Positions 9,416 to 64,000 of a stretch of DNA of 64,000 nt are shown here, one piece after another. This DNA is from Lepidodermella squamata (taxonomy: Eukaryota > Animalia > Gastrotricha). Location: assembly GCA_047495785.1 (NCBI GenBank), contig JBLDXI010000012.1:620001-684000 (forward strand). Reading direction: 5' to 3'. The notes under the pieces are model-generated. The model saw only the letters and a list, made by a program, of their open reading frames with translations, was not told the origin of the DNA and searched no databases. The position numbers and the translations under genes are program-made. How positions within the stretch are numbered: the stretch's first letter is position 1; each line of letters begins with the position of its first letter.

Positions 9416-12400
9416 TTACGGAGCCGAGGCTATTGTCTCTTTGAGAAACGCAGCCGCATCCGAAACTTCATCGTGAAGGTTCAGAAGATCCGTGAATTCC
9501 TCCAATTCAGCCGGTACCATGTCGGAGTCAAATTTCGAAAGCAGTTTGCCGCAAGCCTGCACTAGGGCCGCGTCATTTTTGCGAATATACGACGCTAGTG
9601 CCTCGGTCCAAGTCGGGGTAGCTGTCAAACGAGGCCATAGGCTCGTGTAAATCGAGTCGCACAGGGCGAAAAACAGCAAAGAGGGGCGATAGACGTCAAA
9701 CGCGTAGATTTGTCGGTCGCCCGACCCTAGCGAGTCGATAGATTGGTTTGGCGATAGATGCCTGGCATGGGCAGCAATCAAAATCCGACGCAACAGCCCG
9801 AGTCTCAGAGCTTGCCATTGATCACGGTCGACAATAAGAAGTGACAGAACTGTGTAGTAAAACGCACCCTCCGGCTCGTAGGCGGACGAGACCCAGCGAG
9901 AAGATGGCTGTTCTAGAAACGCTATCACAACTGAATCCCGAGCATGGGATGACTCATGATTGGTCAAGGCGTACAAGGCTAGATAAAGCAAATGCGGAAC
10001 GAGCTGCAAATTCGTCTCTCGCCCGCCTCCGCCCAAGTCAGCGCTGAACGGCTTTTGTTGGGCCAGTTGAAGCAGCAAATGTTTGACATCATGAACCACG
10101 ATCGAGTATGACCAACCGCCCGTTGACGTCATCGCCAAAGCCGCGACTTCACATACATTCACGTTGTACCGCTGCAATGCAAGATTGAAGTGTTGGTCAG
10201 AAACATTAGGCCCTTGGGTGGGTAGCAAGCCGTTGCAACGAGCCCCGGCGTTGTGAAGCTGAGCCAGGGTCCAATCGGCCTGGCCACCGGCAGAACGCGC
10301 GTGGGACGCAACAGCCGAGTCGTGGCAGTCGATGTGGACACATACCATCGAACTGGCCGTTGCAACACCTGGTCTACCTCTCGGGTCGAACTCATCAAGC
10401 GGCGCGTATCTCGTGTAGGTATAAATAGCCAACAGCCGATTCGGCGATGATTTGTAACCCTCACGGCAAATGCAACACGCCAAACCGGGCTCTTCTTGAA
10501 TCATGGCCGCAGCTTGTAACGAGGCGCGAGGCGTTGTGGTGACGCGAACTTGCCCGGTCGCTTCATCAGTCGCCATACCAAGATCGGCCAACTGTTTCTG
10601 GCGGCGGTTCATCGCCAGTCGCTTCTTCTCCAAACGAGTTGCTTCTCTTATCTCAGCAACAGCTTGTTTCGCCTCACTGGAATCGACCATCGCGTCTAGT
10701 ACTGCCTCGGCAAGAGGACCGATGTTATTAACTGAACAAGCTTGTTCGGTTTGATGAAGTTGCCGCAGACAATTTTCAGCAACGTATTGTTGGCTGCTTT
10801 TGTGCCCTCTGACCAAACCGGCCAGGATCCTCAATACGAAAGGAACGGCTGGTCTGGAGGCCAATTCTCTCCACTCGGGTGAGTCGGGTGCCCATTTTCC
10901 TGACGGCGTGTGCAACTGGATGTATTCAACCGCCATTCCAAGGATACCTGAATAAAATGCATTAATGAATAAGTAAAATCCTCCTCAAAATCTAGAGACG
11001 AACATATTCTATGCATTCTGAATTCAAGAACTACTGAGTTAATGAGTAGATTTTACCTTCAGTGACAATCATGTCTTTGAGATTGCTGCCGTACTCTCCA
11101 ACGTCGATATTTTGTACGACAGTGCAAAAGCAGTCAATGATAAGCTGGTCGTCCGCCGAGCGTTCCTGGTCGAGGCGCGAGAAGGCCGCGCAATACGGCC
11201 GGAAATATTTGATCAACGCTGACATGCAATCGGGCGAGCCAAGGGCCAAATATGGCAGAATGTGCATCAGTGAATGGAGGACGCCCGAGTTTGACCGAGC
11301 CGAAGTCACGGCTAACTGGAGAAGTTGCTCAATCTGGCCAATACTGGCGCATTGACTCGCGAATGCGGCATGCTCACTAGCTGGTAATTGAGCTGCTTCG
11401 GCTAGAATGATTTCTATCAACCGGCAAAGTTCCTGGCTTAAACTTCCGGATTCTGAGGCCGATGACGGCTGGGCGCGGGGAGTGGCTGGCGGACCAGGTC
11501 TGGGGGTCTGACAGGTGGTGGCTGATTCAACAGATTCTGCCCTCAAACAGCGAGTTAGCGCTGTTAGAAGTGATGAGACCGCCCCGAGAGATGAATCGGT
11601 TAATTTTCGCCGATTCGCCGCCACGTTGACGCAATATCCGAGCAGCTTGACAGCAACAGATAATAATGGTTTACCAGCTGCAACGTTTTCAACACCAGCC
11701 AATCGCTCTAAAACTACAGATAAGCCACCGGACGAGCCAGCCATGAGCGATGCCATTTTGAATGTCTCCTCCTTATCGATATTAGCGTCGACAGGCGGCA
11801 GCGATTCGACAGCATCTTCAGTGGCATCCCCCAACAAGCCTCGCATTCGATAAATTATCCGCATAGGTTCGGCCGGATTTGCGTTCGGCCCTGCTTCAGC
11901 TAACCAAACGCGTCGGTAGACATCCTTGACCGGAAGAGAAAGATTGATGATCTTGTTGCGAATAAGAAGCTCCATGCTGTTTTCATCTTCCAACAACGCG
12001 ATGAGTTCACAGTCATGGCAAATTTTGTTCTTGATATCGCGCATCAAAGGACCCATTCCAGGGTCGGTCGACTTGTACGGGTTTCCTAACATTCGACCTT
12101 GAAGGAATTCTTCCTGCTCCTGGCATTTTTCGATTATCATCGTGAAATCGTCCTTTTGTTTCTCCTCGGGATGAATGATCTCACACAAGCGTTCGAAAAC
12201 ATACGCCGGTGACTTGTAGTCATCAAACGGCATAGTTCGCGCGATGGAAATGCAAATATCAGCCAGCTCCCGGCGATCAGCTTCGGATGTTCCCGTCAAT
12301 GTCTCCAACAAAGCTAACATAGCGGCCTGAGTTCTGTCGATGGCGCGAGTTCTTGAGGCTACAAGTCGTTTAAGGGCCAAATAGCCTCGAAGGAGTAACG

Positions 12401-15400
12401 AAACAGACTCTTTCTTGTGACGATTGCGAATCTGCTCAACCTCCAATAGACTGGTCAAAATGTCGACTAATGCGCCGAGACCAGTGCCACGAGTGAGAGA
12501 AACGGAATGGAGACCGTTCGACATGCCACCGGGTAGAAACCCGCCTAGACTAGAGTATATCGCAGCGATTTCAGATTCAGTCAAGGTTTTAATCTCCGAA
12601 TCGATCAGCTTGAAAATCCGCCTTAGACCACCTTTAATGGTCATGTATAGCCGCCATTGGTGATTAGCAATCATTTTCTTGTACAGGGCGACAAAATGAT
12701 CGCAGACCGACTCGGAATATACGACATCTTCAAGGCACGGAGTCAAAAAGGCAATGATATGACAACGACGCAGATGGACAGGCGCTATTGCCACCATAGC
12801 CTCGATGACGGAACACACCAGTTGCCGAACACCGGCCGAGTAAGGGCAGAACAGGGCTGCCTTCACCCAGGGAGATAGCAGCGGCATCGATCCGACTTGT
12901 TCGAGTTTCAAATTCAGTAACGGGCACATTCTACGCCTGACTATTGTCATTCGCCATTGGGCGGCGTATTTTTCCATCAAGTATTTATTGCGAGCAGAGC
13001 CGCGGTTTCGAAGCGACAACGCACGTTTGACGGATTCTTGCCAAGCAGCGCTTGATTTGCCGACCACGCTGACAGCTGATTGCTGAGCTTGACGCCACTT
13101 CGCGAACGAAACGCGCGGGTCGGATGATAACCAGGCTATAACGTCAACGACAAATCCTTCAGCAACGTTCAAACTCGCGGCATTTGCGGCTCTCAGGTCG
13201 GCTTGTTGCTGTTGTTGCTGGTTCTGTTGCTGCTGTTGTTGTTGGCGGCGAGAGGAAGACGAAGACGAAATCGGGATTTTGCTCGCACTTCCCGACCTTT
13301 CCGCCTCCAACGCAGCTGGTTTCAGCATTTCTTGGAACATCTCCAAAATCGGACCGAGAAGCGCCTCCCATATGAAAGGACTCAAAATAGGGCGCTGGGT
13401 GCCTTCGACAAAAAGTTGAACTGACGTCCTGAAATACGTCTCCCAAGATGGGTCATTCCTTAGAGCAGATGAGGCCAGCATTTGAACTGACGACCGGATG
13501 AAAGGGACGTCATCTGGAGGGGCGCCTTTTGATAGCCACGATGTAGCTTCAGCAGATATTGCGTTCGCAAGCCCTCGAGCTGCATCTGGGTACAAAGCGG
13601 TAAGAACACTCAAAATGGCTCGAGCATCAGCTCGTATCCTATTGCTTGTCGATGTGGCTGATAGGTCAAGCAGTAATGGAACCAAAGTGTGGACGTGTTC
13701 ACTAAGCAGTTTACGACCCGGTTCGCTGAGGGCAAACGCTCGAAGTAACGTCAAACAGTGCATCACAGTGGAAGTAAGACAGGTGAAGCAGAGATTCGCT
13801 GGTAACTGCCCGCTAACAGAAGAATGCCGGGGCGTGCCGTTATTCAGCGGCGAAGTCGGGTTTTGAGGGTTAGGCATAACTACCATGGTGTTATTTCGTC
13901 GAGCTTCATAACCCAACAACTCCATGCGACATGCCCGTAATCGTTCGGCGAGACGACTCAACTCGCCAGCCGAATGTCGACAGTCATGCGCGTAACGAGT
14001 TACCAACTGCTGAATGACAGGGTTCACCTGAGCCGAGCTGTCCGCGCCTTCGTTCCCGGACCCTTGACTGTCGCCCGACTGTTTTGACAACTCCTCGCGA
14101 CCACCTAGGCGGTCAAGCAGAGTTATGACATTACCGCGATAGCCGTGAAGCTGTTGGTAATTTTGGTCAATTTTTTCCAGCAGTGAATCGACTACAGCCA
14201 GGGTTTTCTCGTAGTCTGCATCATTTTCAATCGGTTCTACCGAAGGGCTCGGCCGGCATGTGACAACGGTTTCGATCTTGACGTATTTCGAGTAGCCGCA
14301 GCTCGCACACATGAATGGATCACGCTCGTCATACAGCAAGTGAATAGCTCGACATTTGTGGCACTGAAAAACGTTTTCGCCGCAATTTGAACACACCCCA
14401 GACGACCCGGTGACGACATTGGAGCAACGCGGGCATTGAACGACCTCCTGCCCGCCGGGTCCGCCAACAGTCGTCGACTTATTTTCGTAAAATTCAGCGA
14501 TTTCAAACATCAAATTTCCTGCTGTGATTGGGACTAGGAAATCAACCCGGGCATCTGACTGCTGCCTGACCAATGATATGGTTTTAGCTCGTTGCCACAA
14601 AGCAGGGCGACCTAAAAAACAAGTTTTTAAATATTCGGCCTAACTATTTCTCTAGGCTGATCTTACCCTTCAAATCAACCAAAGGCACGGAAAATCGGTT
14701 ATTATAGTACAGGTTGATTGTTTTGATCATGCGATGCTTCTTAACATCAATAAATTTAAACGCAATCGAAGCGATTTGATGCGATCCGCCGGACAACTTG
14801 AATGTCTGCGTCGTTGAAGTGAACTTCGCATCAGATTTCAAAGACTGCAGCTTGACCTGGCCAAATGGCGTTTCTTGGAAATTGGCACATGATGAGCATT
14901 GCGCAGTTTCCAGGTAATAGCCGGCGTTTAGACCGCCGATTGCAGTCGCGAGACGAGAATAAATTCCTGCATTCGGATGCTGCTTAATGCCAACGTTAGC
15001 CTTGTCCAACGACGAAACAGTGAAATCCAACGAAGATTTCAGTAAATCGTTATTGCTAGAAAAGGGAAACAACTTTATTATCAGCAAGAAAATTATCATT
15101 GTATACCAACCTGTTATTATCTGACAATTGACGATCGGCCGTTTTCAACCCGACAAGGGAAAATCCGAACAAATCAACGATTTGAGCAGCCCGCATGCCA
15201 GATATAGAAAATTTCCGGAAAATCCCTTCCAGAAAAGTAAGCAGGAGTTTGAAATGAGCTGCTGAGCAATTTTTCGCGAGCGATAGAACGACATCATGAC
15301 CTAGCCATCGTACGGTTGAAGTGTTCGAGGCAAGAAGAACAACATGGAGAAAGTCACTCATGACATTCGGAGGCACTTGAGCCAAAATAACATTGGCGAT

Positions 15401-17029
15401 ATGTTTGCCAGTCGCGTCTTTCGGCTGTTGAAGCACGGTGTCTAGCAACTGAAGAAGCGATAGGCGAACTTCATCGGCTGGAACAGCGGAACACATTTGC
15501 AATATGTTGGCCATTAAATCGACTCGCCGAGAAAACAGGCGAGATAAGCTAGCCGGTCGACCCCCGGCGACATCGATACAATGTTTCAATTGTTCGCAAA
15601 CTTCGAGAAGTCGGTCATAAGGCAATGCTGAAGCTGCTTGTCTCGAGTCCGCGTTATTCGAGTTTTTCAACAAAAGAGAGCTAAGCCTATCCAGTGTCGA
15701 CTCCAATTCGTTCATATCTCGGAAGTTGCGATACTCATCGGGGCCGCCGAGAATTTGTTGCAAAACGCGACGTATCTGGCGATGAGCAGGAGCCAGAGAC
15801 TTCAAAGCCAGCAGACCACACAACGTCGAGGCCCACTCATCACTACGGAGTAACACAGAGGCCGAGGAAGCAACTTGGGTGGAGGGCGACGCGGCTTGCT
15901 TGTCGATAAACGGCTTCAAACGCGACAAGAAACGTAAAACTGAATCAATCAAAGCTAGATCGTAGTCTTTGAATAAATCAGTCACGCTTCCTGTTGAAAC
16001 CCCACTTTCGATGAAAGGATGAAGGTCATAACTGGTGACAGGAAGCATTCGGAGGTGGTCCACTGCTTTGGGTGCAGAAGGTTCGACGACCGAAACAGCA
16101 GATGCGTCCGACATTTTCCGAGCTTGGCGCTTCAAAAAATGTTCGTGAAGACAGAATAGAAAGGTTTGAAGGATTGCCGGTAAATAATTTTTTATTCCAG
16201 TGTACACCACTTCTCCAAGCGTGCTTTGCTGTGAAGCATATTTCTGGCCAGAATTAGTCAGATGGGCGAAAAGTGAGGCGAGTAACCGCGAAACTAGCAA
16301 CTGGTAGTCAGTAAGGCGAGTTGAGTTCGATGACCCTTCGCTTTTCGTGGAAAATGAAAGGCCAAGAGCTGACAGAGCGGCATTAACCGCCCGTGAAACA
16401 CTCATATCCTCCACAGCAGCATTTCTCAAAATTGAAAACAAGACTTTCAGAGTCGGAATACATCGAATGGCTGGACTAGATGAAAGATCCTTCAAGCTTT
16501 CGGTTATTCCATCGAGGAGAAGAACGGTCAATCGAGGCGAGAGCGTGTTATTCGATACCTCCTTAATCAAACCTGCGGGTAGGGAGAGTTTCTCCGGCGA
16601 CCGCATGTCATCGCTCTCACTTGCCGCGTCAGAAAATGAGCTCGGCGCGAAAAGAGATGAGGCGCCTTGGGGAATACTTGATCCGCCCTGTTGAGCCGCC
16701 GCACCGGGTGCCAAATTAGCCCAGGCAAATCGGGGCACAGGAGGAATCGGTGGTACTGAATCCTCATTTTGATTACCCGAATTGTTGTTCTGTTGAACGG
16801 CATCAACATTTCCAGGATCCATTGATAGAGCTAACGCTAGGCGAAACGCCTGCTCCTCGGTCAACTCTCCGCCCTCGGCCGCCATTCCGGCTAACAATTC
16901 AGCGAACGCCGGCACCTCAGGCGGGACATCTTCGCCGTCATTTGGCGGCAAGGTGGCATTATCGTCATCATCGTCCATCACATCATCGGCTCCTCCCCAC
17001 TCGTCCTCTTCATCGTCTTCCAAATCCAT
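9416..17029 (-). CDS. UBR4: UBR4/p600/pushover C-terminal half, about 2464 aa. Exons 17029-15111, 15055-14667, 14611-11057, 10947-9416
   Basis: UIM-like EEQAFRLALALSM, DOC-like KFTSTTQ, Zn cluster QCPRCS...CGENVFQCHKCRAI, calmodulin-site-like [43 protein letters not shown] and hemiRING EEPGLACCICREGY. Exons total 7395 nt in frame. Confidence 0.92.
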
Positions 17030-17235
17030 GGTTTATCAATTTAAAAATCAACTAAAATTTAAAAAACAATGATAGTCATGGGACATCTAATTTCATTGCA
17101 GCATTGAATCGCCAATAATGTAACAGAAGTATAAGATTTTATCACACTGTAAATCAAAATCAAGACGAGAAGAGAGAAGATGATGAATATTTAGCCTTAG
17201 TTAGACAAGGAAGAACGACACTCGTAACAAACATT

Positions 17236-20200
17236 TCATTCTGTGTGCATTTTTTCGATGCTTGAAGCAGTGGGTGAAGCGATCGCCTCAGCATGAGGAG
17301 TTGCCGCCCCGAGGCACTGGTTTAGAACCGATGCCCAGGGCGAGCTTGATCCGCTGAAATAGAACAAATCGAGGGCTTGCTGTGCAACAAAAGATTCGTC
17401 AATGTGAGGACTGCTGAGCAAACCGGCAAGCATTTTAGCCGATTGTGGCCTTGAAATGGCTTCGAGCAACAATAGTACAAGGTAAGGGGCGAAAGTGAGG
17501 CTGCGAGAAAGCTCCAGTTGAAAAATAGGTGTCGTCGACCAAGTCCAAGGCCGTTCGACGCTCAACTCATTGTAGCAATCCATCATTTGCTTCAAAATCT
17601 CAGGTGAGTTTTTCGCGTCGCTAAAGGCATCTTGGCTCGCTGTTAATGCCAAGAAAGAATGTAGCATGATCGAAAGTTCGAAATGAGAAACGTCGCGTTT
17701 TTTCAGGTCAATAGACGTGGCGGCGCTGTTCACAATATTTCGAACTTGTGAAATAGTGACACCAGAACTAGACAATAGCCACGATAATGTTGCGCGGAGG
17801 ATAGCGAGCGTTGAAGGCGTTTGCAGCAGTTTGCTAACAACTTTTTCATCCGGCATGTTACCACCAAGGCGTCGTAAAATACCGATACTGGACAACAACA
17901 CGAGTTGAGCAGAAGAACCGATGTAAATCGGAGGGAATAAACGATCACGGCGAGCAGCTGAGCCAGCTTCTTCAGCTTGCTTCGAGTTATTGGCAGCCAT
18001 CGACGTGAAAATGGGAGCCAATTGAGGCGGCGCATCAGCTTCCGGCTCGACCCATCCGAATTCGTCACGCGATTTCACGTATAATTGAACAGCATCCACA
18101 ATGGTAGTTCCAGACGAACTGGCGCCAAAGACGATCTGAAGCTTGTTTCGAGCGGCGATAGTTTCAGCGCGAGTCAGCGGGCAGTCGTACCAGCGGGATT
18201 GCGAGCAACTTATAGGAATAGTACGATCAAATAACCTATAATTCAGAATTGGTAACTCAATTGATCAGTTTCAAATTAAAAAATTACCTGATAAATTGGG
18301 GAACTTTGTCGGCCCGGTGACCACCAAGTTGGAATCGCACCCCAACTAACAATGTGCCGACTGTTCGATTTGTAACTGACAAGGTGAAAGAACCCGGATT
18401 AGCGATGTACAGACTGCTGGCTGACGGAGATAGCCGGGTTTTTAACTGCTCACGATTGTATACGTATAGCAGCTGCGAGCCACCAAATTCAACATTCGTC
18501 GCCGGCTGGCAGTGCTCGAAGAAGTCGACTGGAAATTTGACGACTGCGGTATTTGCCGCAGATGCATAGCTTCCAGGCCTATTCCCGGCATTCGACCGTT
18601 TCGGTACTGGCGGTGGAACGTCCTTATTGCCCGAAGACACCCTTTTCACCTGCGGCTTCTGTTCCTCAACAGGTTGCCTGGACTCAGATGATTCAGAAAA
18701 ATCCACCAGGTTTCCAACATCGGGCGCAATAGGAGACGAATAAGCCATCCAATGACCGATTTGACTTGGTTCAAGGCTGCATTTCAGCAGCTTTCCGTCA
18801 TTTGCGATACCGAAGACGCACATGTTCTTAGTACCGTTAGACTGTGGCGCTAAGAAGAAGTGGCAACACTTGACACCACAATGATTCAGCTGCTCGGAAA
18901 TCGCAATTGAAATTTCATCAGGTCGGACTGATATCGCTACGACATTTCCTGTGTCAGTAGTACCTAGAAGCAGACCAGGTACGAGAATATCAATGATATC
19001 CCCGCCGCACAAAACCCATTTTTCTCTATCATTCCGCGGCGAAATTACGATGACATTGTCAACGAAAAAGTCAACCGGCGTGTCCATTTTAAGCACAAAA
19101 TTCGGAAGAAGATACACGCCAGACTCGCACGTCAATGCCAAAAGTTGCAAGCGATGCGAATATGTGATTGACAGCCCACCATCACCGAGCGTCTCTGCGG
19201 CATTGCGCCACGCCGAAGGTAGCGATTTCTGCTCACCGCGAGCCAAAACAACGGAAGTGACGTAGAATGGCCCGGCGTGCGCCCCGAAGTCAGCGCTTAA
19301 CTTCTGAACGTAAATGTGGCCATTCGACCCTAGAATAAGAACGTATTGTTCATCGGCTGAGTAAACCGCAAACGCCATATCAGCAATTTTGCATGAGGGT
19401 AGCAGGAAGTGATATATCGGGCTCGTCACATCTGATGCAGTATCGAAAATTTTTATACAGTCGTTTACAACGACGCCGAGAATGGAAGACGACCCGGGCA
19501 ACCACCGGCAGCCGATGATGAAGGATTGCTGGCTTTCGAGTTGAACTTGAACGGCAAGTTGCTCACGAGGGACGAAAGACGAAGCTGATAGTAGCACAAC
19601 TTCAACGTCAGACGAGCCATAAACAGCTAGCAATGCGTCGTTCTCTCGATTTATTTCAACCCCAGCCAAACTGAAAGGCAAATTCAAACTGCCCAACTTG
19701 TGCGGTTGATATTTCCGTGGTTTTGTTGTTGACTTGTTGCTAACTGAAGCAGCGGCTAATGATAAATGATTGAGCCCGAATAGGTCGAGCCTATTTCTGG
19801 CTTGGATCACGGCGTAATACCCGAGACTTCCGTAAGGATTGCAAGCAACCAGCTTCAGCCTGATCTTGCCTGTTTCAACTAGCTGCTTCAATCTCGTTTT
19901 GTCAGTTTCAAAAACTTTGTGGCCGTCAAATTTGAAATCTGACGTCAACTCAATGTAACATTGATCTCCGAACAGCGACGAGCCAATTTGAACAGGCGGC
20001 GTCGATGTGGATAAACGGTTCAGCTCTGACTTGCAACGCTTCGACAAGCACAACGATTCAGATTGCAAATGCTCAATCAACGATGACATCATCAGGCAAA
20101 CTTCGCCTTGTAAATCTGTGTCTTCGATTATATCCACGATTTTTTGTACGGCGCTTTCATTCGAAATCACAAACGAATCTGTGAAGAGCGAGGACGATGC

Positions 20201-25544: not shown

Positions 25545-26228
25545 CTTCAATTGCCGAAATAAATATCTAGATAATTGTTAAATGGTTATGTCGTCATTAG
25601 GTGACTTGAAGTTCGATTAGATGACGAATAAATTCAGGAAATCATCAAGGCCTTTAGCCTTTTAGAATACTCAAAGGGGAATTAGTCCTTAGTTCAAAAG
25701 CTGAACCACAGTCAAAAGGAAGCTGAGTGCTGAGTGAAGGACACCGTGTAAGTATGCAAACAACAAGTCAAAAATTAGTAACCAACTAATTTAGTAGTTT
25801 TGTCATGACCTAAGATGTCTCGATTTCCCGGAAAGCTGAAAATGGATACTACTTGATAGGCCCGTCTCGTTTTCCGAAAGACAACTAGCGACAAAAAGAG
25901 GGAGAGGTGGCATCTCATATCTGATTCCGGATTCCGGCCCCTCCTGACTTTTTTGTAAAATAAAAATGGGCTTTACGCAATTATGAGTGTGCATCAGCGA
26001 AGCACTCGTTTGATGCTCAAAAAAGAAGAGGCCCGAATCACCTGCAACGTCTCAACAAGTAAGGGGCGTTCCGACAGAGAGATTTTGGCAGTCGAAAAAA
26101 CCTAAAACCTACCGGCCCCAAAAATCACTCATAAAAATTTGTTCACCGATAAATAATTAAATTACTAAATTGTAGTTGTCAATTAATTTTCTTACAACAT
26201 ATAGAAATTATTTTTATTGCGTTCTTAG

Positions 26229-27267: not shown

Positions 27268-27516
27268 TGCGTTTATGTCTGTAGTATGTGTCCACCCAAC
27301 ATGCCATGACGGACACGGCGAAGTAATAACTTGCTTGAGGTCACACTTAATATGAACCCTGACAATTAGATTAGATTGTCTACTTTCGGGATTTTTGCGT
27401 CGTTTCGTGAAACTATTCCTTTAATTTGAGTCATGATACGTCAAAAAACCTTGGCTTAGATATACTCTTGACTCTTTACTTTTCATCTTTCAGTCATTTT
27501 AAATACTGAATTAAGA

Positions 27517-33877: not shown

Positions 33878-35344
33878 TCATTTCGGCTCAAGAGGAGCCA
33901 TTATTACAGACTTCGTTGGAATAAAATATTCAACCAGCATGAGCAGGATAAAATGGATTGAACACATTAGCACCCAAAATGGACCAGACAGGGGGCCAGT
34001 TGTTGCATACCTGGAATATCAAAATTTAATAAGCGGAAATATTCAGTGATGAAAGGCACCGTTGAAATCGTTGTTTCAAGCTGAGTCGAAGGTTCTTGTT
34101 AGCTGTCTCGTAAACTAGTTCAGTGCGCCTGGCCACATCAGGCCAACGGTAAACGTTCGCTATCCGTCGATGAGCGTCATCTGGGTCAGGGTGTTTGCCA
34201 GTTTTGCAGTCGGAGATCGCGACTTCAAGCGCGACGATGAGATCGTCAACATTGGGTTCGGCTAATCGAATCAGATCAGGAGGCAGCACTTCTGGGACTC
34301 CACCTACCCGGGTGCTGACTACCAGCAACCCACAGGAAGCCGCCTCAACTATAGCCATGCAGAAGGCCTCAGTTAACGATGTGTTCAAAAATATGTGGCC
34401 TTTCACCAAATGATCTCGAACTTTCGAATGCTGTAAAGCTCCAGCGAAATGAACCCGATCGAACAACTGGTATCGATCACGAACTTCTTCAAGCAAAAGC
34501 AGCTTAGGTCCATCACCAGCTAGCAATGAAAACGTCATTTATTTGGTCAACTTAATTTTGAGCTGAACTCACCTATGAAAAAGTCGACATTGTTATGCTT
34601 TGAGCAGATTTCAGGGATAATTCCAGCCAGCAAGTCCATGCCTTTACGGTATACTAAGCGAGAAACAACGACAATGCCGATTCGCTTTGTAGAGGGTCTT
34701 TCTTTAGGTGGAAGGGGCGTGAAAAATTCGTGGTCGATAGCGTTAGGGATTACGGAAACCGAGCTCGGCTTCAACGCGGCCCGTAAAACCGTGTTTTCTT
34801 TACTGGTGTGAGAAACGCAAATCACGTGATCGACTACCGAAAGTGACACCTGAAAACGCCAAGTCATTTTGCGTTAAAACTTATCTAAAATTTCTCAAAC
34901 TTTTAAAATGTGATTTGTGATAATTGAGCTTGCGTCTGCAAAGCCGAATAACGAATGATCCGTGAAAACGGTGTGAATCCCAAGGGCAGCTGCGTGAAAA
35001 ATTGATTCGAGCGCCATTGTTGAGAAAGCGGAATGACCGTGAATGATCGTGATTCGCTCACGAATGAAAACGTAACGCAGCAGGGGCAGAGTGCAAAACA
35101 AGGTCGGGAGACTCGCCTGGTTATAAACTGGTTTAAAAGGCAGGTAGTAAACTTTCAGCTTAGGATCGTCAGCAATCGGATAGCACACTCCGATATATTT
35201 CGGCAGGTAAGCGTGGGTTACAATTATGACAGAATGACCTCGTTGACGAAGGCACATGGCTAGCTGCTGAACGTGTGTTTCAACTCCACCCATATTTGGG
35301 TAGAAGAAATCGGTTACCATGCAAATTCGATGACTTTTTACCAT
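33878..35344 (-). CDS. PIGA: Phosphatidylinositol N-acetylglucosaminyltransferase subunit A, 4 exons
   Basis: [40 protein letters not shown] and [22 protein letters not shown]. The last exon (34010-33878) supplies the C-terminal TM segment. Confidence 0.95.
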
Positions 35345-37477: not shown

Positions 37478-37596
37478 TTTCAATTGAGAAAATAAGCCTA
37501 AAACAACAAGTTAATAGGGGAAATATATTTCCATCTCGATAGCGATTTGACGCGAAATCGAGTCACACGAAATTTGGCAAAATCATGAAATGCACT

Positions 37597-37779: not shown

Positions 37780-39070
37780 GGCTGAGATCGCGGTACAACA
37801 TAATGCATAATGTGCAATTAACCAACGAAATTTACAGCCAAGTTCCAAGTTAATAAGTGAAACATGAGAGGTAGAATTACCAAGATTCGGGTAAGCAAGG
37901 CGACAAAGGAAACCGCCAAATTATTGGCGACCCGTCGCGGGATATCGCCATATCCCCTCAACATTGGTATCTGACATCAACGATACCAGTTGCGAAATTC
38001 GATAAAATGCCATGGCACCCTAATATTATCTATACAGAATTGAACCATCGAGGCACCCGCATCAGCTTTCAGCGCTTCGTTTTTGCCAATGAGGCACCCC
38101 GGGAATGTTTTCAGTCGCGACTTCAAGAAGTAAAACATCAGACATAAGACCTGACTCGCTGGGGAAAGGTACCGCGGCCCGTGGGCGAGCTGGCGACAGG
38201 GATTCACAAAGGATTTGCAAAGGATTCGCAAAACTGACATAGTTTCAGGTGTAGCGAGGCCCAAAATACGCAGAGAAGCGGTGCCAAGACAAACATCAAA
38301 TTGAGTGTCAATTGACGGTATTTTGTGTTTCTGAATATGTTCCACCTGAAATAGCCTCAAGAGTCTACAAAATGAAATTCACTGATATTCATTGCCAGCA
38401 AATTTCCAGAGAGCAAAAGCTCGGAGCCATTACCGATCGAGGAACCCAAGGATCAGGGCCCACCGCGCTGTCTCTGGACGCAATCGCAGCGGCTACCACA
38501 CCTCTATTATCGTGAAGGTATGTTTTACGTTGAATTAATGTCAGCAGTCTATAGTCTATTATCAAACAGGCGCAGATGAGCGCAGGTGTTTTTTCTTGGC
38601 GTCGAGACAAGGTGCTCTTCCGCCCTCTCGTCTTCCATCCCTCATCCCTTGTCCTATAGGAGAAGCACTTGAGCGCTAAGTGGGAATCGCGTCACGTGTC
38701 ACGTGGGTAAATTTTGAGAATACTATTTTGTTTTGGAAAAGCTGACGGAGGATATTTTTCAGGTTGCATTTCTTAATATCGGTCAGGTTTATGAATCGAT
38801 CCGGCGCTCAATCGCCGACTGCGGTTAGGTGATGACGACGCGAAAACCTGACAGGTTTGTTCCTGTCCCCTGAACAGGTTTCTTGACTCTGGAATACTGT
38901 GCGCTCTAGTGACGTGGCGAGTTACGAATGTTAATCAATTATCAAACGGAGGATGGTTTTTATTATCATTGATTTTCCCTTACATTGCTCCGTAGAAATG
39001 ATTGTTTATTGTTTGCTTTCTTGTGCATGCTGGTATTTAGAATTTAAGCTCATTTTTACTGCCATTCAAT

Positions 39071-39538
39071 ATGATTTCCACGTTCGCTAAGCGGTCAGTC
39101 ACTGCAATTCAACAAGTCAGCAAGATATATTCAGTAAAAGCTCTGTATTCGTCGGCAGCGGGTAAGAGGTTGTACTCGAAAGAGCATGAATGGGTTTTGG
39201 TGTCTGGATCAACTGGAACTGTTGGAATTTCGGATCATGCCCAAAAAGCGCTCGGTGACGTTGTTTTTGTAGAGTTGCCTGAGGTTGGCACCAAGTTGGC
39301 TATCAATGATAAAAGTGGCGCCGTTGAAAGTGTCAAAGCTGTTAGTGATGTCTACTCGCCTGTGTCGGGTACTGTCTCCGCGGTGAATGAAGCTCTGAAA
39401 ACGTCCCCTGGCTTGATAAACAAATCCTGTTACACCGATGGATGGCTCTACAAAGTGAATATCAGCGATTCATCGGAGCTTGAACAACTAATGGACGATG
39501 CCAAGTACGACGAATTTTTGAAGAGTGCAGACAGTTGA
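39071..39538 (+). CDS. GCSH: Glycine cleavage system H protein, mitochondrial, intronless
   Basis: YSKEHEWV, GISDHAQKALGDVVFVELP, lipoyl motif VESVKAVSDVYSPVSG and a basic N-terminal presequence. Confidence 0.96.
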   Translation: MISTFAKRSVTAIQQVSKIYSVKALYSSAAGKRLYSKEHEWVLVSGSTGTVGISDHAQKALGDVVFVELPEVGTKLAINDKSGAVESVKAVSDVYSPVSGTVSAVNEALKTSPGLINKSCYTDGWLYKVNISDSSELEQLMDDAKYDEFLKSADS

Positions 39539-39814
39539 TCTGCTGCAATGCTCATCCTTGCAACCGGGCCCTTGGAATTTTTTGTTAACCTAATACAGCC
39601 TTGATAGTATTGTTGCCAAATATTTTTATTTGATTTCTCGAAACACTACATTGCTTTCCTTTGCTACTTGGTGATGGTGCGATAAATCGCGTATAAATGA
39701 TGATGACGAATTTACATTATCAATGCATAAATGACCCCACCCTGCTCCGTTTAGATTAACTCTTTTTATATAAATCATTATTCTTCATCTTTGTGCTATT
39801 TAGATTATTTAAGT

Positions 39815-41933
39815 ATGCGGGTTGAGTTGATACTTGCAATTGGAATAACATGCTTGCTTGGGAAGTCATCTGCGTTCTATCTTCCCGGCGTTGCTCCTAA
39901 AAGTTTCTGCGAAACAGCAAGCGATAATTGTCAGAATGAGATTAACATCCTCGTAAATCGACTTGAATCGATAGATTCAGCTCTTCCGTATGAGTATGCC
40001 AGCTTCGATTTTTGTCCGGCGAAGCCAAGTGTTGTGATGCCGGCCGAAAATCTGGGTCAGATTTTATTCGGAGAGAGAATTGAGCCGTCTGGTTATAACG
40101 TGAGTGTTGAATCAAAGCTATATTTTCATGCCTACTGTTATTATCTATTTCAGTTCAATTTTCGTAACAACAGCTTGAAGTGTGCGAACGTTTGCACAAA
40201 GACGTACAAGGCAACAGGTAAAGACAACGCAGCAACGAAGCTTTCATTCTTAAAGCATGCGATTGCGCTGAATTATCATCACGAATGGATCGTTGACAAC
40301 ATGCCCGTAGCTTTCTGCTACAACACGAAAGCAGGCGATGAGGAGGACAAAATCTGCGACCCTACTTTCCCTCTTGGTTGCTTCATCAAGAAGGCCGGTC
40401 TCACTTCAACTTCCGACACATGCAGCTTCTTGCTTGACGGTATCGAACAGAAAGACAACACGTACTACGTTTTCAATCACGTTGACATCGAAATTGGTTA
40501 TCATCATCCTGATGTGGCCCACCCTGAGCTTGGCGCTCGACTTGTTTCAGCCCAAGTTCGCCCCCGCAGTCTTGACTGTGCCGGTGCCACCAAAGGACCT
40601 GTTGCAATTCCTGGCGATAAAGAAGTCGATATCACAATCCCTTACACCTTTTCAGTTACGTTCAAGGAAACTGATGTCCGCTGGTCGTCTCGTTGGGATT
40701 ATTTGTTGAACGCGACTTCATCGATGACGAACATCCAATGGTTTAGCATTCTCAATGCCTCTGTCATCATTTTGTTCCTGTCTGGCATGGTTGCTATGAT
40801 CTTGATGCGCACTGTTCATCGTGATATCATGCGGTACAACCAGCAAGACGCGGAAGAAATGCAAGAAGAGTTTGGTTGGAAATTGGTCCACGGCGACGTT
40901 TTCCGTCCTCCTCAGAAGGCAATGCTTCTTGCAGTATTTGTTGGTAACGGTGTTCAGTTGCTTGTCATGACCTTGATTACTCTCATCTTTGCGGCTCTTG
41001 GATTTTTGTCGCCTGCAAACCGAGGAGCACTCGGTATTTGCGCCCTTGTCGTGTACCTTCTTCTCGGCTGCCCGGCTGGTTACGTTTCTAGTCGTCTTTA
41101 TCGTATGTTCGGCGGCGAGAGATGGTGGTCAAACCTGTGCCTTACCGTGTTTTTGTGCCCCGGAGTCTTGTTCTTAATCTTCTTCATTCTCAACATTGTC
41201 TTGTGGGTAGAGGGCAGCTCAGCTGCTGCTCCTTTCTGGTTGATTATCGTCCTGTTGGTGTTCTGGTTTTTCATCCAGGCCCCGCTCTCGTTCTTCGGCG
41301 CCTATTTTGGTTTCCGGAAAAAGACAATCCGCCAACCAGTTCGTACTAATCAAATTCCTCGCCAGATCCCACCTCAGCCCTGCTACACCCGCCCTCTGCC
41401 TTCTATTTTCATGGGCGGCATTCTCTCTTTCGGCTGTATCTTTATCCAGCTCTATTTCATTCTCAACAGCCTTTGGTAAGTTAACTGCCGATTCCTTTAA
41501 AACGGATTTCTAAAATTTGATAATTACAGGGGTCACCATCTATATTACATGTTCGGCTTTTTGATGTTGGTTTTCGTCATTTTGATCGTCACTGCCTGTG
41601 AATCTACAATCTTGCTGTGTTACTTCCATCTCTGTGCAGAGGTTTGTTCAATTTGTTGACTGATACATGAATTTAAGACGGTTTTGTTTGCAGGATTATC
41701 GCTGGTGGTGGCGCGCTTTCCTCTCGGGTGGCTGCACCGCTCTGTACTTCATGATCTACTGCATTCACTACTACGTCTACAAGACGGAAATGGTGGGAGC
41801 ACTAAACGCAGTCATCTATTTCGGCTATTCGACAGTTATGGCCGTTATCTGTTTCTTGATCACCGGCACTGTTGGCTTCTTGTCGTGCTTCTGGTTCGTC
41901 CGCAAGATCTACAGCGTCATCCGTGTCGACTAG
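39815..41933 (+). CDS. TM9SF2: Transmembrane 9 superfamily member (TM9SF2-like). Exons 39815-40099, 40154-41475, 41530-41641, 41694-41933
   Basis: Signal peptide then [59 protein letters not shown] and [14 protein letters not shown]. Confidence 0.92.
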
Positions 41934-42778: not shown

Positions 42779-42927
42779 TAACGACTATATTATTGTCCAT
42801 ATCATTATAAATATATATATTATATAACGTTATGCACGTTAAAAAGAGATCCTTGTGAGCTTGGAGTAAAGTGTTTCAGTTGAACATTAAATCTGAAAGA
42901 AAATATTTTGCCGCTAGAATTTTAACG

Positions 42928-43765
42928 ATGCCCAAGGAGTTATCTAACATTGCGAAAATGGCAAGCAATGCGGCATCTAAAGCCAAGCCTTATTCGAAGC
43001 CGAATTTTTTAAGCTTGAAGTCGAGCATGAGCTTATCGATGATCGATGATGATGAAGTAGTGGCTATTCGTGACAAATACTCTAAGGTATTGATCGATGA
43101 CTAATTAATTATTCATATCAAAGAAATGCCCTATTTTTTGAGGCGAAATATCACTTTTTAATACTACCTAAAGCACATCACAATCATGATGTTCTGAATA
43201 GCGTGACGGCTCTTACTGGTAACCACGTGGCGTTATTGGAACACATGATCAAAGTCGCAGATACACTGATGGCAAAGTTGAGATTTCCGGATGATATTTG
43301 CTTTAAACTACGGTGGATGTTTTTAGGGAGGCTCCTGGCGTTAAATATCAAACTGGGTTTCACTCAATTCCTAGCATGACGTAAAGTTAACGCGAATTCA
43401 CCGAATTTGAAGTATAAATATAATTTTGAAGGCCGCTCCACATGCATGTGATAAGCACCGACTTCGAATCGGAATGTTTGAAAAACAAGAAGCATTGGAA
43501 TACATTTTCGTCAGAATTCTTCCTCATGGCTGAAGGTATGTGCTTCTGTTAATTCAAACTCCGAATTCAACAAAATATTCCAGATGTCTTGAAGAAGTTG
43601 AAAGCTGATGGTAAAATTGTTGTTGATCGCGCGAAAGCCGAGGAATTGGAGAAACAAAGCCTTCGATGTCGTTGGTGTGGCGGTATCGAAATCAAGAATA
43701 TTCCTGAACTGAAAAAGCATCTAGCTACGTCAAAGCACAAAAATAATGTTGCTGCTAGTCATTAA
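42928..43765 (+). CDS. APTX: Aprataxin (HIT domain plus C2H2 zinc finger), no FHA domain, 5 exons
   Basis: Spliced product has [50 protein letters not shown] and LRCRWC...[13 protein letters not shown]. Mostly missed by the ORF track. Confidence 0.9.
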
Positions 43766-45639: not shown

Positions 45640-45698
45640 TATCAAAAGTTAATAATACGAACTAAGCCCTTTACGATAAATTCATTTCATTTCACTGA

Positions 45699-47042
45699 TC
45701 AAACGACGAAATTAAAAACATTCTCTTTTCGCTTGAAATATTCAGCTAAACGGCAGCAACCGTAACCGATAAAATCATACTCGGTTTGTATCTGCTGCGA
45801 CTGAATTAAAACAACTAGAGCCCAGAATAAGTGAGAAATCAGAGCCGCTTTTTGAACAATAACATAGTAATCAGCGGCCAATTTTTCCAGCTGGAGATCG
45901 GGCATCGATTTGGTTGAATTTCGATGCTTCAAGTAATGTTTAATCCATTTCAATTGGTACTCCCGCGATGGGTATTTGTTATAGTCGATATCCTTAATCG
46001 GCTCAACACCTAAAGAAACAGTGAACTTTATGATTGTTTTGAAAAATGGACAAACCAGCGAATTCATTGAAAAAGTTTCCGATATCGAAGGCTGGGTAAT
46101 TCAAGTCCGCGTATTCAAAATCGATAAATAGGAAAGATGCTGAAAATTAACAGGTAACATGATCAAGAAAGATTATTCTCAAGACAAATATCTCCTAACT
46201 TTTCTGTTCGTCCACAAAAACCATGTTGGTGAAAAGCAAATCGTTATGACACAAAGTCAATGCGTTTGCTTGGTGATTCTTGTAAGCATCAAAATTTGAT
46301 TGGAGCGCGTCAATTTCTGCATTTAAAGAAGACACACTTCCGTACGCCGAGCTGACTCTGTAAGGCATTGTTACGTTTCTTGTTTATGATTTATGTAAGG
46401 TACTGCTACCGGTCATTTTCGAAAATGTGAGGCAGTTGATCCTCCATAAACTTCACCAACTCCCTCATTTTGGTCCAAATAAACGAAGACTCCGAATGCC
46501 GAAAGCAAGGGTTGCTTTTTTCCAAGGGAATGTTATGAAGCTGAGCCATTTTCTCGGCAACCAATCTGGTCGATTAAAAGAATAAGGTATGGATACTTCA
46601 ATAACATCAAACTGACAGTGAATTGTCCATAGAATTCAAAACCCATTCCCGACACATGGGCTCCCCTTCAACGAACTTGTAGCAAATACCATTTTTAAAC
46701 CGGCAGATTATTCTTGGGGCCAATCCATAAGAAGCCAAAATTTCATGCACGTTCAGCTCTTTCTCACGATCCGTTAAACCAGCAGCTCGAAAAATTCTCA
46801 ATACGTACTGCGAGGATCCGATCTGCCAGCTGAGAACATGGTTAGCAAAGCCACCCGCCAAAGTCTTCAAACAATATTAATGTGTTGTCAGAAATTTCTA
46901 CCTGTACCTTTAAAACCCATGACAAATTTCCAATGTCATGATCACTGCCAACTAGAAATGCTGCCAGCTGCTTCAAAGCATCACTCTTAGCAGTCAAATT
47001 ATCGGGATCAAGTAATAAATTTGAGATCACGCCGTTCATCAT
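45699..47042 (-). CDS. ETNK: Ethanolamine/choline kinase paralog B (divergent), multi-exon
   Basis: LAGGFAN, DREKEL, GLAPRIICRFKNGICYKFVEG, LCHNDLLFTN, FIDFEYADLNYPAFDIGNFFNEFAG and YPSREYQLKWIKHYL. Confidence 0.85.
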
Positions 47043-47491
47043 TGAATCTTAAATTTCTAAAACAGGACAACAGTGAAATGGAGTCGAAACTAATCCGTCA
47101 AAGTCCAAGTTGTTGATTAGGTATAGATCCAATCCAATGGCAGTCTTTTTGTGAGGAAACCGATTTTTACCAATTTCAACATCATAACGATCTTCCTTCA
47201 TTTTAATTCGCGCATTATTAGAAGGCACATAGAAAATCATGACTTAGTAGCATCAGGGAGCCGGATCCATTTGACAACAAAATATCAGACAGTTGCACAT
47301 TGAGACATTGAGTTGATTAGGCTAATAAAATTTTTGAAGATAACAGAATTGGTTCAAAAAACCGCAAATCACAACTTTGCCTTCAAAAAATTTGATAATT
47401 AGAAGACTTTAAAATTAAGCAACTCCATAATACAATAGCCGAGCGATGGTTCAACTAAAATTGTGCATAGCCATTCAAAAAATATTGATCA

Positions 47492-48830
47492 TTAATTGAG
47501 AGAAAGATTCATGTATTGACTCTTATATTTGATGTACTGCGAATAACGCTGCACCGCGAACCTATGAAAATGTTCGTTAGACCAAATTGACAGAGAATCA
47601 AGTAATGACACTTACTCAAAATAGTCAAAGTCCAACTCGGAAAACTCTTTCTGCACCAAAGCCCAGACAGACCATATCAAGTAGGAAGCCAAGGCGAACT
47701 TTTGAACAAATATGTACCATTTTTCTACTTCAGCGTCATCGACAGGTCCGATTTGAAGGATTGAGTGGCGCTTGTTGAGGTACTGCCTAATCCAAGCAAG
47801 TTGATAATCACGCGGTGGATAACGATTGAAATCAACATCATCAACGCCGCAGTATTCGACGAGGTGATTGGCAATATCGAAAGCAGCATAGTTAAAGTCA
47901 GCATATTCGAAATCGATAAAATGTATTTCATCTAATGAAAATTGAATTGGTCCACATCAAATTTCTAAGTTAAAGACATACCTTTTTTCGAGTCGTATAA
48001 GATGTTATTCAATAGCAGATCGTTATGGCAAAACGAAATGGGCAGTTCAGCTAAAGCGTGGCAGCAAACACTCTCAATGTGGGACCTCAACTTTGACGCA
48101 TCTTCTTTGAGCTGAGCGACAGATCCGAATATTTCGGTGAACCGCGGATTAGAATTTGTGGAGCTAGCACATTCTTTTTCCAGAATATTTATAAATAAGT
48201 CCAGCTTCTTCCAAACACAGGGCTCTCTTTTGGATAGGTTTAGGGATGCCACATCATTAGTGATGCCATGGGGCTGCTCATCACTTAATGACAAGCAATG
48301 ATAAGCGGCCAACTTCTCAGCTATCAACTTGGAAATATGGGGCTCGCGGACGCTGCTAACTGTTACAGTTTTGCCATCAACAAAGCCTGAAATAAGCTAA
48401 AAATTAAACGGTTGGTGGGGAATTTTAGTCTAAATACCGTAACAGACACCATTTGCAAATTTTACGAAAACAGGTGGCGCTAAGCCAGTCTTGCTTAGCA
48501 GCACTTGAATTGAAAGCTCGCGATCGCGATCCAAGAACTTTTCAGTGCATTTGCCAAAAATTCGAATAACAGCGGCGCTTTGTTTCCGTGGTACGCTTTG
48601 TTCTGAGCTCTTCAAAAAACACCCCACCAGCTTGTTTGTTATACCATCACTAAAGACCTGCAAATTTGACAATTGAATGCATATTTATCAATAAAATACA
48701 AAATAGATACCTTTAAGTTTATTTCATCTGTATTCCAAGAGGGATCGACGAATGGGAATAGGGAAGACAGCGAGCTCGGAGTGAAGTTATCATCGATAAC
48801 ATGAGGATAGTAAGGAACTTCTAAATCCAT
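47492..48830 (-). CDS. ETNK: Ethanolamine kinase paralog A, multi-exon
   Basis: VFSDGITNKLVGC, IRIFGKCTEKFLDRDRE, FCHNDLLLNNI and FIDFEYADFNYAAFDIANH. Confidence 0.92.
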
Positions 48831-48958
48831 GAAACTCAGCCTCAACAAAACAGTTCGATCTAAACATAAGGCAAAATGATAAAATAATCACGAAAAATCC
48901 AGCAAGGCACGCAACAAAACATTGGAAGTAAGGATGATACAATATTTCAGGTCAGAAT

Positions 48959-60941: not shown

Positions 60942-62784
60942 GTCGCACTTTCCACTAGCCAGGGTCGAGCGGAGCAAAGGAAGGGTCTACGCGTTTCTGA
61001 GTTATTAGATCAACCGCCTGAACATTATTGCGCTAATCTAGACCTTATAGAGTTTCATCACCTTTTGATTCATCTTGTCTTCTCTGTTGGTTAAAAATAT
61101 CTGATTTTGATTGGAATTTTGAGTGGTTTGATTATCATCATGATTTCTCTTGAGCTTTGTTAACATGTATTGGTGAACCACTTTGGCCATCTATGCCAAT
61201 CAATCGTTGTTAAAGTTATGCGTTGGTGTATTCCGCAGCTGCTAAGCGAACTGATAACATCAGTCATTGTCAATGTGCTTTTTTGCAATAGGCCCTAGGT
61301 AGAGCGCACGCGTAACAACAAGAAAAAGAACATCTCTGTGTCTCATTCATCTATATACGTCATCTATATAGCATTGCGCTTTGAAAGATCACTTTAATTG
61401 CGAAAAAGCTTGTAATGTTTGAACTGTAGCGTGGTATCATCCTTTCAAACTTACTGCTTTAAAAATTTCACGTCATCCATTCACGCTACTCGATACCAAC
61501 TGTTAGATTCAATTACTGTGTTGTAGTAATGCTTCACTCTGTCACAATGCAATATCGAATATCGAATAGGCAGGTGAAGCGTGGTGCTTCACGATATCAA
61601 AAGTCAACAATTCGATGCATGAACCTAACATCATGCTCCTTCATGTGTTACGAATAAGTCTAATATTAGGAGCAGATATATCTACATATTATTCTACTGC
61701 AGCCAACACTTCTGCTGATACCGAATATATTTTTTTATGTTCGGGCGATTATATAGAGTTGTATACAGCGCTGCCTTTCTTTTCTACGATTTCAACAGTT
61801 AGGATTAGTCCGTATTGTGATCCAACGAATGGTTTGTATAGAGCCTCTCTGTATAAATCAGGCGTTGTTAAACTCAGTCATTCTTACTAATTGCTTCATA
61901 TCTTTTGAAACGAATTTGATTTAGTTGTAACCGTTGTTTTTCTCATCATCCGACTTTGCATCAACAAAAGTAACCTGATCTTCCTACTGTAACGACGATA
62001 GCTGTCACCTACGAATCACACTATTAACTGAATGCACTGCTCTATAGGCTGTTGTGTGACAACTTGCAAGATCATTCTTCTTATGCTGTCTTCATCTTTT
62101 TCTTGTTGTCACTCTGCTAGGCTACGAGTATTATTCTGCTCGGCTTTTTACTCGAATATTATCACCAACACTAATTATTTCGTTTATACTAACTACCTGC
62201 CCTGGTCATATCGTCTCTCTATTCAGCCTTTTGGAATCGATCAAGTGTGATTTTTGTTCTTGTTTGTAATAAGTACTTTAGCACCACGTTTTAAGGTGGG
62301 CTCGCACTTCGATGATGATGATTTGATTCGATTATTGTCTGATCTGCATGACTGACATTCATTTATCCACTACCCTACCCTGCTTTGTTTTCGTGAAAAC
62401 TTGGCTGAGGTTTGAGGACGGTTTCCTGTTGCTCCGCGTGGTCCTGTTGGCGATTACTTATTTGAGTTTGATATAGCTCCGCCTCTTATTAGATGCTACA
62501 TAAACCAATTATTGTATGATTGTGTCAGTATGTTATTCCACTCATATATGAACACCAATATATGATAAAATGAATACTATATAAAAAGAATATATACAAC
62601 AACATCAACTGTTCGTTTTAGTATTTCTCGTGTCTTGTTCTATTTAGCGCCATGTAATAAAATTAAAAATTAATCCTCTTGCAACGCTTTTTTAATCCGT
62701 TATATTTGCACCCAATGACAGAACGTGTTTTGCCTTTGCTATTTAGTACCCATACTAAAACAGTTGATCAAAGCATTAACACAA

Positions 62785-63607: not shown

Positions 63608-63946
63608 GTCAATCTAACAACAACTTCCAAAAAAAACTTGAAGACATAAAATTCAAAAATGTGCTGCAGCAACTTAAATAAGCGTTGTTAAAAAATTGCG
63701 TTATTTAAAAATTGCTGCTGACATGATTGTAGAGCGCCTGGTGACGGTGGTTTTACGGCTCAATTTGTCAACTTGAAACCATGTCAGCTCTAAGCTTTTT
63801 TCAATTTCTTTTCCTCATTTTCATCGCAGAGAACCGTTGGTGATATATGTAAAGTTGAGTTCTCTAGTCTCCAGGAACCCAAGATTAATAGATTTCATTT
63901 TTTGATCCTACGTATTTTTTTATTTGATTTAGAATTTATCAATAAA

Positions 63947-64000
63947 ATGACGGCCGAAGTTGTTGACAAAATCCGACTACCTTCAGATTCAAACGACGAG
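63947..64000 (+). CDS. Probable start of the next gene (MTAEVVDKIRLPSDSNDE...), cut by the window edge
   Basis: ATG lies 14 nt after a TTTAG acceptor, the frame is open to the edge, and there is a possible short 5' non-coding exon at 63830-63848. Confidence 0.45.
   Translation, partial: MTAEVVDKIRLPSDSNDE

Follow-up and report, generated by a model that had tools for sequence, protein, structure and literature searches.

Here we analyze a 64-kb window of the genome of the gastrotrich Lepidodermella squamata (assembly GCA_047495785.1, contig JBLDXI010000012.1, positions 620,001 to 684,000), the term "window" denoting the whole stretch of 64,000 nucleotides and all coordinates without a contig name being counted from its first letter. 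The subject is a set of splice acceptors that stand directly before start codons, together with the tight packing of co-oriented genes, both of which bear on spliced-leader (SL) trans-splicing as well as operons in this animal. The window is compact animal DNA, with a G+C content of 40-49%, about one gene per 3 kb, long exons and intervening introns of 51-61 nt. Its Pfam-backed genes are UBR4, present as two open reading frame (ORF) groups designated UBR4-N and UBR4-C, CCDC39, PIGA, a Band 7/prohibitin gene (PHB2), an LRR gene (LRMDA-like), GCSH (GCV_H), TM9SF2 (EMP70), an aprataxin-type gene (APTX-like) with its zf-C2HE domain at 43589-43765, MRPL44 (mL44), two copies of choline/ethanolamine kinase (ETNK-A and ETNK-B) and a metallo-beta-lactamase gene (MBLAC1-like). 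The names assigned in an initial annotation, which was made from the letters of the window, are borne out by these families for all genes except the last, which carries no name.

That annotation also placed a T-rich YAG acceptor just before the ATG of 14 genes. Reading the window letters, we recovered a YAG at exactly the claimed distance from all 14 start codons. T-richness, taken as at least five T in the ten preceding bases, holds for ten of the 14 and fails for UBR4-N, PHB2, MRPL44 and APTX. The sites are:

17052-17065, - strand: predicted UBR4-C acceptor (aaattttAG), AG at 17053-17052, 22 nt before the ATG at 17029
25567-25580, - strand: predicted UBR4-N acceptor (ttatctAG), AG at 25568-25567, 22 nt before the ATG at 25544; not T-rich
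27480-27493, + strand: predicted CCDC39 acceptor (catctttcAG), AG at 27492-27493, 23 nt before the ATG at 27517
35360-35373, - strand: predicted PIGA acceptor (tttttatttAG), AG at 35361-35360, 15 nt before the ATG at 35344
36661-36674, - strand: PHB2 acceptor (ataatAG), AG at 36662-36661, 2 nt before the ATG at 36658; leader variant on cDNA
37498-37511, - strand: LRMDA-like acceptor (cttgttgttttAG), AG at 37499-37498, 20 nt before the ATG at 37477; leader on cDNA
39027-39040, + strand: GCSH acceptor (ggtatttAG), AG at 39039-39040, 30 nt before the ATG at 39071; leader on cDNA
39790-39803, + strand: TM9SF2 acceptor (gctatttAG), AG at 39802-39803, 11 nt before the ATG at 39815; leader on cDNA
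42904-42917, + strand: predicted APTX-like acceptor (gccgctAG), AG at 42916-42917, 10 nt before the ATG at 42928
45662-45675, - strand: predicted MRPL44 acceptor (gggcttAG), AG at 45663-45662, 22 nt before the ATG at 45639
47057-47070, - strand: predicted ETNK-B acceptor (cctgttttAG), AG at 47058-47057, 14 nt before the ATG at 47042
48860-48873, - strand: predicted ETNK-A acceptor (ttatgtttAG), AG at 48861-48860, 29 nt before the ATG at 48830
62733-62746, + strand: predicted MBLAC1-like acceptor (tgctatttAG), AG at 62745-62746, 38 nt before the ATG at 62785
63919-63932, + strand: predicted acceptor of the last gene (tttgatttAG), AG at 63931-63932, 14 nt before the ATG at 63947

PIGA has a second AG at 35348-35347, 2 nt before its ATG, as an alternative candidate acceptor. 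As the chance null we took every ATG in the window (2,122), the 14 ATGs themselves having been chosen in the initial annotation. Any YAG 2-38 nt upstream is found at all 14 starts and at 60% of window ATGs (p ~8e-4), a T-rich YAG at 10 of 14 versus 12.6% (p ~6e-7), and the pentamer TTTAG at 9 of 14 versus 3.6% (p ~2e-10). Most of the five cis introns visible in RNA end in CAG, and TTTAG is the prevailing ending of the acceptors near start codons. A relaxed scan for a T-rich YAG followed by an ATG and an ORF returned 78 sites in the window; the sequence signature alone therefore cannot identify trans-splice sites.

Direct evidence came from public cDNA and DNA contigs (Logan; short and unitig-like), which were aligned to positions 34800-40700, a 5.9-kb segment in which five of the 14 start codons lie, together with three candidate operon junctions. 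Two of the data sets, X1 (2015) and X3 (2014), are recognizable as cDNA because GT..AG introns of 51-61 nt have been removed and poly(A) tails are present; they stem from two separate studies. X1 bears the further cDNA marks of a SMART-type adaptor remnant and a spacer, 37952-38936, without coverage. The remaining set, X2, is DNA and covers the segment evenly throughout.

In the two cDNA studies, a common non-genomic stretch of 20-23 letters (…GCGAATTTGATTTGTGTCTAAG or a variant of it) stands at the 5' ends of the LRMDA, PHB2, GCSH and TM9SF2 contigs. The LRMDA contig of X1 (777 nt), aligned to 36745-37499, breaks at 37499 and continues with the reverse complement of GCGAATTTGATTTGTGTCTA, the same letters that directly precede X1 contig 5, which begins at 39802 in TM9SF2. 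For GCSH, X3 contig 18 begins at 39039 with TGCGAATTTGATTTGTGTCTA directly before it. The PHB2 contig (X3 contig 17, 1152 nt) is a fully spliced, polyadenylated mRNA of four exons spanning 36662-35386; it opens with the leader variant TCTGCGAATTAAATTTGTGTCTA plus AG and breaks from the genome at 36662. All four breaks (37499, 36662, 39039 and 39802) coincide with the AGs predicted from sequence, and they fall on the AG itself because the leader, too, ends in AG. The leader was not found in the window in a search allowing three mismatches. At the fifth start, that of PIGA, masking of 35348-35375 as repetitive sequence left the acceptor unreadable; an X1 contig aligned to 35112-35347 carries 22 additional letters. 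A shared leader was thus present at each of the four readable acceptors, and the genome uses SL trans-splicing, with the leader joined at the predicted AGs of LRMDA, PHB2, GCSH and TM9SF2. Together with the SL genes described below, this supports, wherever it could be read, the proposal of the initial annotation that the unpaired acceptors take an SL exon.

The source of the leader was sought in the whole genome assembly (121.2 Mb, 151 contigs), with the reversed sequence as a control. The leader 20-mer occurs in 28 exact copies, and the leader-donor junction, ATTTGTGTCTAAG followed by GTATGTAT, in 40 exact copies and 66 within two mismatches, compared with 0-1 in the reversed control. In these SL genes the leader is directly followed by a GTATGT donor. 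The genes are multicopy and lie mostly in tandem arrays, with a spacing of ~605-860 bp, mostly ~600-750 (~680) bp, on contigs C17, C19 and C54; further clustered copies are found on contig C11. Leader variants are encoded at positions 15-18, where G, A, TAAA and TATA occur, and at least two of these are found on mRNAs. The variant carried by PHB2 (GAATTAAATTT) is encoded by two genomic SL genes, both inside tandem arrays.

The SL RNA unit is conserved over ~92 nt, and its first ~30 nt, AACCATCTGCGAATTTGATTTGTGTCTAAG, end in AAG. In an alignment of 12 copies, the exon AACCATCTGCGAAT..ATTTGTGTCTAAG and the donor GTATGTATC are invariant and the middle hairpin is variable; a conserved block (…GCGGGCGGTT…) is found ~45 nt upstream of the SL exon. 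The 5' ACC (positions 2-4) can pair with the donor GGU (31-33) in all 12 copies, with no variation in the pairs. Of the 7+2 pairs that make up the 3' hairpin, two show compensatory changes. As for an Sm site, only a weakly conserved YYGG-UCUC precedes the 3' hairpin and YUUU follows it. Rfam, used at the gathering threshold, gave no match in the window or at five SL gene loci, and none of the curated SL families fits.

Several loci carry leader sequence in unusual forms. Within C17:1136491-1139510 of the assembly (G000, locus L005), the copy at position 747 on the - strand is an SL gene broken directly after the donor GT by the unrelated AAGgtttattgtcggaaaattcg…. On contig C4 (locus L002, G000:C4:651285-654304, match at 652785-652804, - strand), 28 nt of leader exon stand without a GT donor, followed after 12 nt by the ATG of an intronless ORF of 377 codons; such an arrangement suggests a retrogene derived from a trans-spliced mRNA. 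A similar locus, with the leader truncated at its 5' end, lies at C2:993644 (L001). The leader-donor 18-mer was also sought in metagenomes, where eight loci matched. One of them (L023, JACCDR010895355.1, 780-797), a public contig outside the assembly, holds a complete SL RNA gene with the same exon and donor, a different middle hairpin (GGCTCCTGAGCC) and an identical 3' hairpin, and another such contig (L021, OGCL01009087.1) holds two partial leader-donor copies 32 nt apart. The other six were rejected, as they look like chance matches to the 18-mer.

The initial annotation further proposed that co-oriented neighbors form operons, citing short stop-to-start distances. ORF coordinates confirm 59 nt for ETNK-B>MRPL44, 147 for LRMDA>PHB2, 206 for UBR4-N>UBR4-C and 276 for GCSH>TM9SF2, and the spliced contig of the PHB2 message agrees with the 243 nt given for PHB2>PIGA. 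The mRNA ends define the junctions more closely:

35386-35410, - strand: 3' end of PHB2, with an AATAAA signal and the poly(A) site at 35386-35389
39765-39787, + strand: 3' end of GCSH, with a TATAAA-type signal and the poly(A) site at ~39787
35344-37499, - strand: candidate operon LRMDA > PHB2 > PIGA (5' part), delimited by contig ends and acceptors
39039-41933, + strand: candidate operon GCSH > TM9SF2, with the leader on both genes and a 16-nt intercistronic gap

The GCSH mRNA (X1 contig 4) ends at 39787 and is followed by 22 A, with the TM9SF2 acceptor 16 nt downstream. Likewise, the match of the PHB2 mRNA (X3 contig 17) stops at 35386, beyond which come 20 T as read on the + strand; the predicted PIGA acceptor is ~25 nt further on. 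Poly(A)-to-acceptor distances of 16 and ~25 nt are too short to accommodate an intergenic promoter. The LRMDA contig ends at ~36745, 83 nt before the leader-bearing PHB2 acceptor. From the poly(A)-to-acceptor spacing, we infer that the tight co-oriented clusters are probably transcribed as operons. The leader and poly(A) spacing thus fits two of the proposed operons, LRMDA-PHB2-PIGA and GCSH-TM9SF2; the membership of APTX in the latter is weak.

Two further clusters were assessed from the letters. On the - strand, at 45699-48830, the two ethanolamine/choline kinase genes form a tandem pair with ~450 nt between them, and MRPL44 comes next. With 35 nt between the ETNK-B stop codon and the predicted MRPL44 acceptor, ETNK-B>MRPL44 is a strong operon candidate; ETNK-B as a follower of ETNK-A would be a weak member. 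The two UBR4 ORF groups are separated by a 206-nt gap (17029-17238) with stops in all frames, in which AATAAA was not found and only ATAAAA/AATGAA-like variants occur. In-frame stops lie between the UBR4-C AG at 17053 and the ATG at 17029, so this acceptor cannot carry on the reading frame of UBR4-N, and a UBR4-N>UBR4-C operon is plausible. The two are perhaps cistrons of one operon; alternatively, UBR4 may be one gene with a longer cis intron that ends inside the UBR4-C ORF.

The best explanation of these observations, to which we assign a probability of roughly 0.8, is SL trans-splicing together with operon-like clusters that are resolved by it. Small multicopy genes elsewhere in the genome make an SL RNA of ~92 nt, in which the leader ends at a GTATGT donor. 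The spliceosome joins the leader to an unpaired YAG that stands 2-38 nt upstream of the ATG and discards the 5' outron, as is shown for LRMDA, PHB2, GCSH and TM9SF2. LRMDA>PHB2>PIGA and GCSH>TM9SF2, probably ETNK-B>MRPL44 and perhaps UBR4-N>UBR4-C would each be transcribed as one precursor, from which monocistronic mRNAs would arise through cleavage and polyadenylation of the message lying upstream, coupled to SL addition 16-25 (up to ~80) nt downstream. Such a scheme would resemble the operons of tunicates and flatworms, in which a single leader class serves first and downstream genes.

A number of observations weigh against this explanation, in whole or in part. The leader was verified at 4 of the 14 acceptors. 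SL genes with a leader, a GT and an Sm site were envisaged in the initial annotation; at least 40 leader-GT copies exist, and the canonical Sm site (RAU4-6GR) was not seen in the SL RNA, either in the 12 aligned copies or in single-copy folds, which are themselves no more stable than shuffles (z -1.4 to 0). The distances TM9SF2>APTX (~990 nt) and ETNK-A>ETNK-B (~450 nt) are large for junctions within an operon. No X1 or X3 contig bridges two cistrons within 34800-40700, so no polycistronic RNA was observed there; Logan contigs drop rare precursors and do not reveal transcription starts, and polycistronic transcription is for this reason deduced from spacing. Finally, the first genes of the clusters, LRMDA and GCSH, bear the leader as well, so SL addition is no proof of operon membership. 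Downstream TM9SF2 carries the same G variant as these two genes, and downstream PHB2, observed in another run, carries the TAAA variant. As judged from these four contig observations, without counts, the sharing of the first-gene variant by TM9SF2 gives no sign of a nematode-type SL2 specialization.

The last points are also what could be expected if trans-splicing were real and the clusters were not operons, each gene instead having its own promoter, which may lie inside the upstream gene or its 3' untranslated region (UTR), with a short outron replaced by the leader. Close packing would then reflect nothing but the compactness of the genome, which is evident throughout in its gene density and intron size, and neither the trans-spliced first genes, which show that the leader is not operon-specific, nor the lack of bridging RNA would call for explanation. 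We regard this alternative as unlikely, since poly(A)-to-acceptor gaps as short as those measured here are an accepted mark of operons in tunicates and flatworms (PMC7986045, PMC12582326), and unrelated housekeeping genes share one strand.

Far less probable is a second alternative, that the YAGs before start codons reflect chance in AT-rich DNA or ordinary 5'-UTR cis introns, with no common leader. Sites of this kind are plentiful, as the 78 hits of the relaxed scan and the presence of some YAG within 38 nt of 60% of ATGs attest, and some of the ten remaining predicted sites could be cis acceptors. This account is refuted for LRMDA, PHB2, GCSH and TM9SF2, the four readable sites, all of which carry the same leader that the window does not encode; it also conflicts with the enrichment of TTTAG at starts, given that the observed cis introns mostly end in CAG. 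Hardly credible, in turn, is the idea that the shared 5' letters are an artefact of library preparation or assembly, such as an adaptor, a template-switch oligonucleotide or chimeric contigs. An adaptor remnant of the SMART type does occur at one X1 contig end (the loose end at 39097), and Logan contigs are short, unitig-like pieces. The leader, however, is unlike that adaptor, is present in two studies and is joined exactly at AG acceptors; the genome contains no fewer than 40 copies of it that run straight into a GTATGT donor and belong to conserved units of ~92 nt. We thus retain trans-splicing combined with operon-like clusters as the preferred reading.

Additional features of the window were recorded in the course of the analysis. 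A large gene with EGF and laminin-G repeats lies on the + strand at 1043-5057, beyond the range of the acceptor analysis, and ARAGORN detected no transfer RNA genes in the window. The spacer between the divergent LRMDA and GCSH genes contains, at 37558-37951, a very high-copy repeat, with a DNA contig depth of ~5,000-33,000 versus ~86 nearby and with numerous divergent copies and loose ends among the DNA contigs. Within PIGA, at 34800-35141, the X2 DNA yields two contigs that differ by ~13 substitutions and small indels over 195 nt; both forms are present in X1 cDNA as well, which points to strongly diverged haplotypes or copies. A scan of 35300-39900 for bacterial promoters and terminators gave no more matches than shuffled sequence and is irrelevant for a eukaryote.

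With respect to lineage, both arms of the published microRNA Lsq-Mir-Novel-6 (PMC6468455 supplement) are found exactly, once each, in the genome and at the published 102-nt spacing. Gene models for L. squamata come from BRAKER; the publication on its genome is silent on trans-splicing and operons (PMC11660948). Among open-access papers and preprints, we found none in which spliced leaders, trans-splicing or gene operons are connected with gastrotrichs or Lepidodermella, and a text search of the same literature found the leader sequence in no paper. The suggestion in the initial annotation, that the finding would be new if the lineage had no described SL system, accordingly agrees with this literature, which has none for Gastrotricha. 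What is reported here is a known mechanism in a new lineage. On balance, we favor the view that Gastrotricha is a further animal phylum with SL trans-splicing and operons, not yet described as such, in which a leader of ~30 nt ends in AAG, occurs in several variants, is carried by an SL RNA without a canonical Sm site and has no detectable relation to the AUG-ended leaders of flatworms.

The distribution of SL trans-splicing and operons over the animal phyla is patchy, and whether they had one origin or many is still debated (PMC12582326, PMC7986045). Phylogenomic analyses have proposed a position of gastrotrichs close to flatworms (PMC6468455). A gastrotrich system would add a lineage next to flatworms, make SL RNAs and operon content directly comparable between them and, if confirmed, bear on a single versus a repeated origin of trans-splicing in the two groups. 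It would also mean that the giant UBR4 gene is divided between two cistrons of a single operon, each trans-spliced on its own. On the practical side, BRAKER-type models are prone to fuse operonic genes or to place their starts wrongly; SL-aware re-annotation would concern UBR4-N/UBR4-C, the ETNK pair and MRPL44.

Compared with established systems, the arrangement shares some features with each of three groups. In nematodes (C. elegans), as here, a short leader (22 nt there) is joined at a TTTCAG/TTTAG-like acceptor near the ATG and SL genes occur in tandem; nematode operons hold housekeeping and mitochondrial genes and are resolved by polyadenylation and trans-splicing, as is proposed for the clusters described here. 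Nematodes, however, place a specialized SL2 on downstream genes across gaps of ~100 nt (PMC7986045), whereas TM9SF2 takes the leader of first genes. That the animal is not a nematode, as the initial annotation had concluded, is borne out by the CCDC39 gene for motile cilia and by its identity as a gastrotrich, a ciliated animal.

The flatworms (Schistosoma mansoni, Macrostomum lignano and cestodes) resemble L. squamata in having multicopy SL genes, an SL RNA of ~90-109 nt, a GU donor and a leader contained in the first hairpin; candidate operons in flatworms are recognized at gaps of up to 300 bp, and the leader is found on monocistronic genes too (PMC12582326, PMC8629364, PMC7986045). The leaders of S. 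mansoni and M. lignano are 35-36 nt long and characteristically AUG-ended, in contrast to ~30 nt ending in AAG here (PMC12582326). The flatworm SL RNA carries an Sm-like UVUUUGG motif (PMC12582326), and no such U-run is present in the SL RNA here. Comparison of our leader with those of S. mansoni and M. lignano revealed shared 7-8-mers only, not above shuffles (p 0.10 and 0.21); the resemblance was therefore rejected as evidence of common origin.

Among tunicates, both Ciona intestinalis and Oikopleura dioica combine a compact genome and small introns with one leader class on monocistronic or first genes and on downstream operon genes, in all of which they are like L. squamata. Their leader sequence is unrelated and their phylum is different, several leader variants are encoded here, and the polycistronic state is a probable one in L. 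squamata. In the spacing itself the systems are close: the median intercistronic gap is 1 bp in Ciona, and gaps are ~31-57 bp in Oikopleura (PMC7986045), as against 16 and ~25 nt in the clusters described here.

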